Shown here piece after piece: positions 1-55,389 of a stretch of 64,000 bases of DNA. The position numbers and the translations under genes were made by a program. Under the pieces are notes generated by a model. It was given only the letters and a program-made list of their open reading frames with translations, did no database searches and was not told where the DNA came from. Source of the stretch: Geosiphon pyriformis uo1 (taxonomy: Eukaryota > Fungi > Glomeromycota); contig JAAOMT010000502.1 in assembly GCA_016748015.1 (NCBI GenBank), forward strand, positions 310,001 through 374,000, in the 5' to 3' direction. Numbering within the stretch: position 1 is the first letter of the stretch; every line of letters starts with the position of its first letter.

Positions 1-420
1 GAATGACCTCATTATGCAAGAAATTATAATTGGCAATTTCTACTTTAAAGTGTAAAAAACACAAAAACCGACGATTTGACAAAATAGTCTTTGCACATAC
101 GACAAAAGATTGTGCGTTTACAACATTGAAATCAACAGAAAAGGGATTGTGGTTCCACTCATGAGTTTGTCATCCCGTCAAACATGACGATTTGTAAGGT
201 GAGAAAAACTACTTGAAAGACTTCTGATAAATCCTTTGCTAGACACATTACCATTTTCGTCAACGTCTGATTGTCAAGATGGAAAATTTACAAGTCCGTA
301 TTGCAGTAAAAAATGAAAAGCATTAGAGGGTTGAAAGTTTATAACCGTTAAAATTTGGTCTGTAATGAACGGGAGATGAAAATTACGTTTGGGGACATCT
401 TCTCGCTTGATGGAGCTTTA
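1..420 (+). pseudogene. Fanzor2/IS607-type TnpB nuclease relic A (C-terminal half; continues left of the window)
   Basis: Manual translation across frameshifts: NDLI..KKHKNRRFDKIV..IRQKIVRLQ..EINRK..THEF.VIPSNM..RKTT*KT..ILC*THYHFRQRLIVKMENLQVRIAVKNE..GLKVYN..DEN..G.IF..LDGAL. This follows the Fanzor2 order: bridge helix, Pro-substituted RuvC-II, W-x-HY-x-FRQRL, alternative Glu (315-317), zinc-finger remnant, RuvC-III D (375-377). Confidence 0.8.
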
Positions 421-537
421 AGATTCATGCGAAAAATAGTAGTCTTACCTACTACTGATGTGTTACAATTCATTTGGACAGTTAATAAAATGCCACAAAG
501 TTTTGAGGATGTTAGGGTGTGGTAAGACATTATCAAG
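400..537 (+). ncRNA. Candidate omegaRNA scaffold / right end of the Fanzor2 element
   Basis: Directly follows the Fanzor ORF end. Stem 437-443 (tagtagt) pairs with 451-457 (actactg); its loop cttacc (444-449) is complementary to ggtaag (521-526), giving a pseudoknot. Sequence becomes more AT-rich after ~540. Confidence 0.45.
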
Positions 538-36096: not shown

Positions 36097-37403
36097 GCCT
36101 TTGGTGATCAGACATTAACGAAATCGATAGTGCGCCCAGCATAGCATAATGTTCGATGCCTAAAGGGAAGAATGACAATAACATTAAATTAGTGAGTAAA
36201 AAATGCGACAGCCTTTCTGTAAATTTCTGTCTGCATAATATCTTCTGACACATGCACCCAATCGTCTTTTCTAATCTTCTAGCTTTAGCTTTCTTTGAGA
36301 GGTATTTAATTCATCTTTCTTTGAGCAAAGATCATCCATAAATTTGCAGAGGCAGAGTCTATTTTGCCTACACCTCTTGTTGAAGACCATATAAATGGAG
36401 TACAAATGCTAGGATTTATGGAGACTGAATGAACAGAGTCATTCACGAGATTTTTGCAAAGCTGTTTTTGCGTCTCGAATTCCCAGGCAAACTTTCATTC
36501 ATTAATTTTCAGATATTAAGTGAGCTTGCCATCTTGTATGGATTGGGCCACTTGTTGTTTTCGCGTTTTTCCGAAGTGGAGAGGCCATAGTACATGTTAA
36601 TCCCGAGAATAAAGATACAAAGCAATTTAAAAAGAAACAAAAAAATTTATTATCTTTATCTTGTGTCGCTGTGGATATGCATATATTGCTGGAGTGCGAA
36701 GGTAAAATACATAGAAGCGAATTATTATGATGTGATGCAGTGCCTTACGAGATTGAAAAGATGATGTGTTGATGCACCTTGTTATTGCTTTGTATTATGT
36801 TTAATAACTTCCTTTCGCACAACCAATACTTTATCAATCGTTTTGTCTGTGATTTTAGCAGGATCGAACCTAAACAACTTCTTAAAAGCATGCCAAGACG
36901 AACGATGACTCTGCAGAATTTTCTTTCACCCCAGATAGCTGAAACATCATTAAAAAGATGTTTTTGTTTAAATGTCATAGGTTTTAAACATCCTTTTTCT
37001 GTGATATCATCTTGTTTCATAATGATGCGACGCCTTTCGTTCCATCTCATCCTAATATCAAAGGCAAATATCCCTAAGCCCATCCATCGCTTCATTAGCT
37101 GCTTCTGAGGATCGTTAGGATACATCTTGACAAATAACGCGCAGTTAAGACTTATAACGTTTTCCATGGGCTGCTGTTGCCTTTCCCTTATGCTTTTTTG
37201 TTCCTGCATTCTCTGCAGTAGTGAAAAGCTATCCTTCCTTGCATGCGAGATAAAGACTGTGTTGGAAAAAAGAATATCCTAAGAGTTTGTGCCTGTCAGA
37301 GGTCCCATCGTCGAAAAGAACCACGAGTTCTGCAGAATGAAGGGAGAAGATATATTGAAACTCGGAAGAGTCTTCAGGAACGAATTAACAATTTTTTTCT
37401 CAT
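36097..37403 (-). pseudogene. Fanzor2/IS607-type TnpB nuclease relic B (N-terminus through the W-x-HY motif; zinc finger, RuvC-III and right end missing)
   Basis: In order on the minus strand: LQNSWFFST (N-terminal extension), VKMYPNDPQKQLMKRWMGLG (TnpB YP..QK..W.G), SFQSRKALHHIIIIR, DGKLT..KFAWEFE (WED), VHSVSINPSICTPFIWSSTRGVGKI (RuvC-I, cf. SIDPGVRT), LCKFMDDLCSKK, KARRLEKTIG, QTEIYRKAVAFFTH*FNVIVILPF, MLCWAHYRFR*CLITK. Confidence 0.85.
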
Positions 37404-37500
37404 GACACGTATTTTTATAGGGGGAACGCGTAAAAATATACCCTTCTTGGAGAAGGATATTTTATCCTAAAAGTTGGTTCTTGTGAATGTGTATAAACAC

Positions 37501-53740: not shown

Positions 53741-55389
53741 TGGATGTAATAAATTTATTTTAACAAAAAATGAAGTTCTTCAATTTTGAAACTTTAAAAC
53801 AAAAAATATCCAATTAAAGAATATAAAAATATTACATAATTGTATATTTTATTTAAATTTTTAAAATATTTAACTTGATTGGAATTCACTTATTAATTTT
53901 AATTAAAAATTAAAATTTTCTACTCTTTATTTTAAAAGTATATTTTCTAAAAGCTTTTAGAATAAAATTTTTTTTCAAAAACCAATTTTAAAAGAATTAT
54001 TGAAATAATAATAAATTCATTTATGTCAATTTCAATTCCAGAATTAAAATTAAAGCTTGATAAAAATTATTTTATGATTATATTTCAAAAAAATTGCCAC
54101 AAAATTTTATCAAAATTTTTGTTAAACCCTCAATACTAATATATAATTTGGTTTTTTTATGTAAAATTATAGCCATAAAAAAATTCTTTTAATTTTTCTA
54201 AAAATATTTTTAACTAATTGAAAATTTAAATCTGACAAAACATTTATATATACCAGTTTTTAAAATTGAACAGTAATTTTTTTTCAAGGATCTATTGTTT
54301 GTTTTGCTGAGTTTTAATAAATTAATATATATATATATATTTTACATCTGAAATTATCTCGCTAAAATTTGATAATTAACTTTATAATATTTGATAGATT
54401 TCTTTTATATTAATTTTTACCAATTAGTTTTATCAATTTAATTAATAATAGCTATTTTTTTTAAACTATATGTATTGACCTTGATAAATAACCAATATAT
54501 TTATAATAAATGTGTAACGTAACTCACTTCTTGATCAACCTGTTTATAGATAGATTGTAACACATCAATAATTAGTATTGTTATATAATCAAGAAATCCC
54601 TGAAGGAAGATCCTCCAAGTACCATTTTTATCTCTTTCCCACAATTTCCTAATTCCTCATCCTTTGTTGATTAGACGTTGCCGAAAGCAATAATGCATCC
54701 CACAAAGCATAATAATGAAAGAGTGTAAGAATGAGCTCATTTCTTAAAAAAGCTTTTAATAATCTTTAGTAAGATCTGTCATTTGTAAATATGCATAGCA
54801 ATTAAATTATAAAACAAAACATAGTTTTGGGTCTTGAAATCCTCACTTATATTAAAAATGGGAAAATTAAAAAGTGATAAATCAAATTTTACAATTTTTC
54901 TTTTGTACCAATTCTTTTTTAGAAACTGTATGAATAAGTGTTTTAAGAATAAATGCAACATTTTTTTGTTATTTTAGAAACTGATTTTTTCTTTTACGAT
55001 TTTCCAAAAGTCTATACTATAAAAAATCGTGATTTCGGATGTTTTTAGGAACTGATATGTAAATTTTTTCTTAATAAACCAATTTTAAAAGAATGATTTC
55101 TTAATGTATAAAAAATTATTATTGGTTATCAAAACAAGTTTTAAAGAGTAAAAATAGTGCTATATTATCATAAGTAACCTTTCATGGATTAATTTTACAA
55201 ATGTAGAAATTCTTGATTGTATTAATTTGTTGCTAAATGCTTTGGGAAATTAAAAAAAAAATTACTTTTTAATGTAAATATTGGTTGTGTTAAAAAAATA
55301 TTTCGAGACTTTGGTAATTAGTTAATTTATAAAACTAAAAATTTTATCATCTCAAGATAGTCCATTACTTTTACTTCCCGCCCATGATA

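Follow-up and report, generated by a model that had tools for sequence, protein, structure and literature searches.

The first 476 bases of the window, the 64,000-nucleotide stretch of Geosiphon pyriformis DNA analysed here, very probably belong to a dead copy, truncated at its 5' end, of a transposon of IS607 type with a Fanzor2 gene; they form the 3' portion of this copy, which, as part of the same reading, in all likelihood has no function now. This copy, referred to as relic A, occupies C404:309560-310476 on the plus strand, starting 440 bases to the left of the window and ending at window base 476, and its portion within the window (1-476) was delimited as a 5'-truncated Fanzor2 pseudogene by an nhmmer search with a DNA profile of the family. 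The alignment is weak from about 440 bases to the left of the window start (C404:309560) and becomes confident from about 300 bases to the left of it. The coding remnant ends at window position 420 and the element continues to about 476; this right end was set via the alignment of 17 copies, the nhmmer match itself reaching window position 485.

The motifs quoted in a previous sequence-only reading of this DNA, from RRFDK to GDIFSLDGAL in relic A together with their counterparts in a second copy (relic B), were all found in place when the DNA was translated. All features of relic A lie on the plus strand. The remnant of the bridge helix (69-142) contains RRFDK (69-83, frame 3) and EINRK (128-142, frame 2) and is colinear with the family sequence KAKRLDKAI...NEIHRK. 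It is followed by THEFVIPS (157-180, frame 1; VIPS at 169-180), at the site of the canonical TnpB RuvC-II glutamate, where the family has IP (FDAIVIPSF). The W-x-HY-FRQRLI block, C*THYHFRQRLIVK (237-278, frame 3), has a stop in place of the tryptophan. Beyond it come KNE (309-317, frame 3), the likely alternative RuvC-II glutamate, which corresponds to IIQNE-AYTSKT-CxxC in the family; a zinc-finger remnant (318-374, from the nhmmer alignment), in which traces of IGGSEVY and of the second knuckle persist; and the RuvC-III motif GDEN (372-383, with DEN at 375-383, frame 3), which is DRDEN in the family. RuvC-III and the C-terminus together occupy 375-420 according to translation, nhmmer and the copy alignment, the C-terminal GDIFSLDGAL (391-420) being read in frame 1, and the family's open reading frames terminate in ...DRDENGAWRIFLRALLDGAL. 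The copy alignment assigns 421-476 to the 3' non-coding tail and the right end of the element (...TGATGTGTTACAATTCATTTG).

Relic A was compared with other copies of the family using two profiles: a DNA profile made from 15 other fetched genome copies, and a protein profile for which 12 stop-free ORF pieces were taken from further copies, with neither relic A nor relic B included. When the window and its left extension were searched with nhmmer, the DNA profile matched at three places, which are relics A, B and C. Relic A matches on the plus strand over profile positions 735-1744 with E 2.4e-92; relic B matches on the minus strand (window 37454-36097) over profile positions 94-1472 with E 9.5e-198; and relic C, also on the minus strand (window 54710-54541), matches over profile positions 1422-1489 with E 7e-10 and over 1585-1741 with E 6.8e-13. 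With the protein profile, the match to relic A (stops translated as X) covers window 42-317 and has E 2.2e-10; that to relic B covers window 36276-36097 and has E 8.1e-8.

The motifs in window 1-420 could in principle be chance matches in AT-rich DNA read in three frames, and two results would agree with this: the match between relics A and B inside the window alone is weak and not significant (tblastx E 0.18, over a 16-aa W-x-HY block; blastn E 0.28), and Pfam is silent on the individual pieces. The probability of such a coincidence is nevertheless negligible, given the profile matches at E 2.4e-92 for DNA and 2.2e-10 for protein, the latter from independent copies, and a colinearity over 900 bases that ends at the right end shared by the family. 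The pairwise similarity that had been expected between relics A and B, which is lacking within the window, does appear once the left extension is included: to the left of the window the two are colinear (tblastx E 1.35e-6), with NNKWPYPHKITS in one against NNKWPNPYKMAS in the other and a RuvC-I-like INPGVR against INPSIC. Because of this leftward colinearity, together with the independent DNA and protein profile matches, the observation of relic A as the remains of a transposon gene is confirmed.

No Pfam match was found for the stop-free pieces of relic A, which are 27-44 aa long, or for the pieces of the transposase (tnpA) remnant described below, because these pieces are too short, and the Pfam TnpB zinc-ribbon model PF07282 does not match relic A itself. 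The zinc-finger remnant and GDEN are covered by the family DNA profile only. The RuvC-III region, for which a TnpB profile match had been proposed as a check, is thus matched by the family DNA profile and not by the Pfam zinc-ribbon model, and since no TnpB profile matches it directly, the RuvC-III and C-terminal identity of relic A is transitive, by way of the family DNA profile.

Relic A is 5'-truncated and frameshifted, and it contains many stops. Between the bridge helix and the W-x-HY block the reading passes through frames 3, 2, 1 and 3 in that order, as determined from the nhmmer alignment and translation; the FDAIVIPSF region has deletions of 9 and 12 bases; and a 1-base insertion puts GDEN out of frame with the downstream GDIFSLDGAL. 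At RuvC-I, 90-82 bases to the left of the window start, the sequence reads NPG, the aspartate codon GAT having become AAT (Asn). KNE and VIPS are retained, and the CxxC that should come next after KNE is gone: the spacing from NE to DEN is 19 codons, compared to about 33 in the family, from which it is deduced that about 41 bases are missing from the zinc finger and that the first CxxC knuckle has been lost. The two profiles conflict at this point, since the protein profile pairs VRIAVKNE of relic A with vrviiqNE at high posterior probability, while the family DNA profile instead runs a deletion over KNE. It is likely but not certain that KNE is the original alternative-Glu codon, and the exact site of the zinc-finger deletion is ambiguous.

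Relative to the confident majority columns of the copy alignment, 200 of 682 positions in relic A differ, with two thirds of the differences being transitions and with a mild GC-to-AT excess. Its G+C content is 33%, against 26.6% for the window as a whole; relic B has 37%, and copies that are better preserved have about 40-42%. Relic A, whose identity to any other copy does not exceed 65%, is among the most diverged copies, and it looks to be one of the older fossils of the family. The leftward extension of the contig, which had been suggested as a means of recovering the 5' part, added about 440 bases and reached RuvC-I; the 5' half was not recovered, no family sequence being found in the 27 kb upstream.

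The sequence to the left of the window also contains, at C404:307544-308600, the 3' part of a very abundant LINE-like repeat (593 candidates in a first look at the genome), which ends about 0.8-1 kb upstream of relic A. Copies of this repeat are 64-76% identical, and it has a 285-aa open frame with a Cys/His-rich block (C.WCG..ED..H.F..C). A Pfam search with this open frame gave no match, and the repeat resembles the terminal part of a non-LTR retrotransposon.

Relic B (window 36097-37454, minus strand; nhmmer) contains the last part of the tnpA remnant, followed by the Fanzor2 N-terminus, RuvC-I (INPSIC) and the region from the bridge helix to W-x-HY, and is 3'-truncated. The strings RRLEK, EIYRK, TH*F and CWAHYRFR*CLITK are found on its minus strand at 36097-36340. 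It retains the last 45 or so codons of tnpA, of which relic A has no part; and it ends just past W-x-HY, at profile position 1472, while relic A extends to 1744, through the shared right end. Relic A thus does supply the C-terminus that is absent from relic B, as the sequence-only reading had maintained, and its further statement that the two together cover nearly the full protein also holds, their joint span (profile positions 94-1744) being nearly the whole unit.

Relics A and B belong to the same family and lie 36 kb apart on opposite strands, an arrangement which could arise through local (segmental or inverted) duplication of one insertion or through the splitting of one element into two pieces. 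Since the relics overlap over 538 aligned columns, they cannot be halves of a single copy, and within this overlap they are only 60.4% identical, whereas between relic B and two copies located elsewhere in the assembly, on different contigs (L019 and L021), the identity is 72-73%, and relic A is no closer to relic B than to any other copy; the median pairwise identity among copies, over the columns where the two relics overlap, is 65.5%. A local origin of either kind is judged highly improbable. Because relic B is closer to copies on other contigs than to relic A, the two are independent insertions.

The remaining match, relic C (window 54547-54734, minus strand; nhmmer and sequence), consists of the W-x-HY block joined to a RuvC-III remnant and followed by the 3' tail and right end. 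It has an internal deletion, as a result of which MLCGMHYCFRQRLINKG almost directly abuts (E)RDKNGTWRIFLQGFLD, and its right end is intact-looking (...GTTACAATCTATCTAT). Relic C could be either a fragment or a derivative shortened by deletion.

The unit that is repeated across the genome is compact, about 1.7 kb in length, with its left end roughly placed. Its nuclease gene starts with MQ(G/R)RRA and a basic stretch, after which comes a TnpB-like N-terminus (...YPNHPQKQLL.RW.GL.R..YN..V), and the motifs of the family nuclease are SIDPG, FDAIVIPSF, W.HYRFRQRLI.KAEELG, IIQNEAYTSKTCxxCG, IGGSEVYxCxxC and DRDENGA..IFLRALLDGAL, of which NEAYTSKTCxxCG and DRDENGA are conserved among family copies. 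A glutamate occurs six residues before the first CxxC (IIQNE-AYTSKT-CxxCG), and at the canonical TnpB site the family has IP (FDAIVIPSF) and no glutamate. Family open reading frames match PF07282 with E 1e-11 to 9e-14. In L028, L031 and L036 the basic stretch, KRKGKATAA.RK, directly follows the start codon and precedes the TnpB-like first strand; it is a possible nuclear localisation signal, such as has been reported for Fanzors.

At RuvC-I, DPG (GAT-CCN-GG) is found in 8 of the 14 copies aligned there, and the aspartate codon GAT in 11. The other three, relic A, relic B (at about window 36500) and L026, have AAT (Asn). A nuclease-dead subfamily marked by this shared asparagine was considered and is unsupported, since none of the three copies is the nearest relative of another and one G-to-A transition suffices for the change; because they are not nearest relatives, the substitutions look like independent G-to-A changes.

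The link to IS607 is provided by the sequence directly upstream of the nuclease start MQ(G/R)RRA, where a decayed serine-recombinase (tnpA) remnant is found inside the same repeated unit. Its translation is YLYGRVSSTKQKEDLERQ...SDIGSVFNFKRSGLETLLE...RDRLWEFAFDLFQ...VLFDNTTSDEHELSQD, which was also read as YLYGRVSSTKQKEDLERQ...SDIGS.FNFKRSGL...RDRL.EFAFDLF. The IS607 transposase model NF033518 matches at 37 places in the genome, with a best E of 5.5e-21, all 37 matches falling below the curated cut-off of 110 bits because they are fragments, and PF00239 matches above its own cut-off at 3 places. About a dozen of the tnpA matches lie about 1.1-1.4 kb upstream of a zinc-ribbon match on the same strand. 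The best-preserved tnpA remnant is that of the copy on C783 (L036:2589-4340), which scores 80.9 bits with NF033518 and is followed by the nuclease gene. The same tnpA match, with equal score and stop pattern, occurs both at the end of C649 (C649:450158-450535) and close to the beginning of C783, an arrangement suggestive of either an assembly overlap or a recent duplication.

Two of the family's features, DPG and the glutamate six residues before CxxC, are signatures of Fanzors and of bacterial pro-Fanzors (Yoon et al. 2023, PMC10711439), and the expression 'alternative catalytic Glu' in the sequence-only reading is accordingly apt for Fanzor2. The term Fanzor2, as used in PMC3627910 and PMC10530073, denotes a TnpB-like nuclease in an IS607-type element with a serine recombinase. 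Assignment of the family to Fanzor2 on this basis is supported because a TnpB-like nuclease and an IS607-type serine-recombinase remnant are present in one unit. The description of relic A as a Fanzor2 relic is accordingly borne out by what its family contains: DPG, NE-x6-CxxC, the PF07282 zinc ribbon, DRDENGA and the upstream IS607-type remnant. Among solved structures, the best match is the Fanzor2 of mimivirus, L79 (9b0l), with E 3.9e-11 for a single ORF and 5.2e-15 for the profile; it ranks first at 59 bits, followed by Cas12f-type proteins at about 53 bits, and no Fanzor1 structure is matched at E up to 10.

Fanzor1 genes are found in typical eukaryotic transposons (hAT, Mariner, Helitron and others) and encode a larger protein with insertions. 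DPG and the alternative glutamate are common to both Fanzor types (PMC10711439), and a more divergent Fanzor lineage is present in the genome (L008, L010, L011, L023 and L025), both of which would be compatible with derivation of relic A from the Fanzor1 gene of a typical eukaryotic DNA transposon. We consider this derivation very unlikely in view of the tnpA remnant of IS607 type, which lies directly upstream within the same repeated unit, the compactness of that unit at about 1.7 kb, and the outcome of the structure search, in which the best relative is a Fanzor2. The IS607-type, Fanzor2 reading of relic A is retained.

The abundance of the family, which the sequence-only reading had surmised from two diverged copies, was determined by a direct count in the genome (a 128.3-Mb assembly in 792 contigs), and this count shows that the family was indeed once abundant. 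A six-frame search with PF07282 gives 118 matches, with a best E of 2.8e-18, and a search with a 170-aa family ORF gives 149 scored matches among 240 candidates; these six-frame matches, at least 118-149 in number, set a lower bound on the copy number, and relic A is one of at least 150 decayed copies. Among the approximately 150 scored matches the search turned up no intact nuclease, the largest open frame being 251 aa, and none of the 20 fetched loci has an ORF longer than 177 aa. The family looks extinct in Geosiphon pyriformis. The strongest PF07282 matches in the genome, with scores up to 72.9 bits, belong to L008, L010, L011, L023 and L025 (e.g. C404:445889-446086 and C701:385626-385823), which have 43-47% protein identity to the family of relic A and are undetected by its DNA profile; these loci make up one or more additional Fanzor lineages of greater divergence.

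A 3' tail and a sharp right end are common to the copies: similarity among the 17 aligned copies stops sharply after ...GTTACAATCCATCCG / ...TATTATTGATGTGTTACAATCCATCCG, and the flanks beyond are unrelated. In active relatives the scaffold of the guide RNA would end at the right end of the element. When the last 240 bases of 12 copies were folded with RNAalifold, one weak helix of 7 pairs (-3.6 kcal/mol) was predicted, with no usable covariation, and relic A has an 8-base deletion within this sole predicted helix. The retention of the 3' tail and right end of relic A to the last base could be read as a sign that the host still makes use of the sequence, for instance by deriving a guide-like RNA from it or by employing it in regulation, even though its coding capacity is gone. 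The deletion in the only predicted helix, the position of relic A among the most diverged copies (at most 65% identity to any other) and the failure to find an intact nuclease able to use an RNA derived from it all speak against such a role, for which there is very little likelihood; the reading of relic A as a dead copy is preferred.

The history that best accounts for relic A as a dead IS607-type copy can be outlined as follows. The intact element, about 1.7 kb in length, consisted of tnpA, encoding a serine recombinase, followed by the Fanzor2 (eukaryotic TnpB) gene, with its end about 60-100 bases past the stop codon. To judge by established IS607, TnpB and Fanzor systems (PMC10711439, PMC10530073), TnpA would have mobilised the element in double-stranded form. 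As its guide the nuclease would have used an RNA with a scaffold that overlaps the gene's 3' end and terminates where the element does, at the right end. By analogy with these known systems, the RNA-guided nuclease would have cut sites without the element. The family multiplied to well over 100 copies in the Geosiphon pyriformis genome and subsequently decayed, relic A having inserted independently of relic B. Relic A lost its 5' half, gained at least 4 frameshifts and several stops, underwent the deletion of about 41 bases in its zinc finger, and acquired the Asp-to-Asn change at RuvC-I.

Geosiphon pyriformis is, to our knowledge, the one fungus that houses cyanobacteria (Nostoc) in its cells. 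It is conceivable that the IS607/Fanzor2 burst resulted from a transfer out of the lineage of the cyanobacterial partner and that relics A, B and C are its oldest fossils, an origin that we consider unlikely. In a scan of bacterial sequences in which 80 loci were kept, the matches were to Magnetococcus, Myxococcota, filamentous cyanobacteria (Microcoleus and others), Uabimicrobium and Chloroflexota, at 36-50% identity. An origin in Nostoc itself was set aside, Nostoc being absent from these 80 loci. Viral contigs were also rejected as a closer source: over about 95 aa the viral relatives are 33-48% identical to the family and the bacterial relatives 41-50%, so that the former are no closer than the latter and the two groups are about equally distant. 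If a cyanobacterial transfer did take place, it would provide a datable natural case in which a bacterial RNA-guided nuclease transposon colonised a eukaryotic nucleus via endosymbiosis.

Relic A on its own is a dead and ordinary fragment which changes nothing; it adds one copy of a known kind, an IS607/Fanzor2 element. What gives it value is that it extends, by one dated fossil, the record of a large IS607/Fanzor2 family in a symbiotic fungus of an early-diverging lineage. From a curated census of this family, for which relics A, B and C would be among the entries, one could learn the timing and the manner of the rise and extinction of a bacterial-type RNA-guided nuclease transposon in a fungus. 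As a rule, elements of IS607 type are rare among eukaryotes. A survey of transposons in arbuscular mycorrhizal fungi (PMC11952901) makes no mention of IS607, TnpB or Fanzor.

The closest known system with a solved structure is ApmFz2 (L79 of Acanthamoeba polyphaga mimivirus, PDB 9b0l), whose match is to the C-terminal half of the family nuclease. ApmFz2 shares with the family the motifs W/Y-x-FxQRL, NE-x6-CxxC, IGxSxxYxCxxC and DRDEN, and it also has the IS607 setting with a serine-recombinase TnpA; the two are about 44% identical, over 75 residues only. Unlike ApmFz2, the fungal elements sit in chromosomes, exist in hundreds of copies and are without exception broken; relic A has lost its 5' half and first zinc knuckle, and its RuvC-I aspartate is no longer intact. 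The TnpB proteins of bacterial IS607 elements (the pro-Fanzors, mostly cyanobacterial) have the same signatures and the same partner transposase as the family, and the bacterial matches, which include Microcoleus, Kamptonema and Oscillatoriales, reach 41-50% identity to it over about 95 aa. In the present case, by contrast, the element resides in the nuclear genome of a eukaryote and has LINE-like neighbours; the copies have decayed, and the N-terminus of the family is basic (KRKGKA...) and contains a putative nuclear localisation signal. The IS607-type Fanzor2 elements of other eukaryotes, as portrayed by Bao and Jurka (2013, PMC3627910) and in PMC10711439, share the organization of the family: they are compact, with tnpA followed by the nuclease, and like the family they have DPG, the alternative glutamate and a short 3' non-coding end. 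The fungal Fanzor2 hosts in Table 1 of Bao and Jurka (PMC3627910) include yeasts, with one family each; the copy number reached in Geosiphon pyriformis is unusually high for an element of IS607 type.
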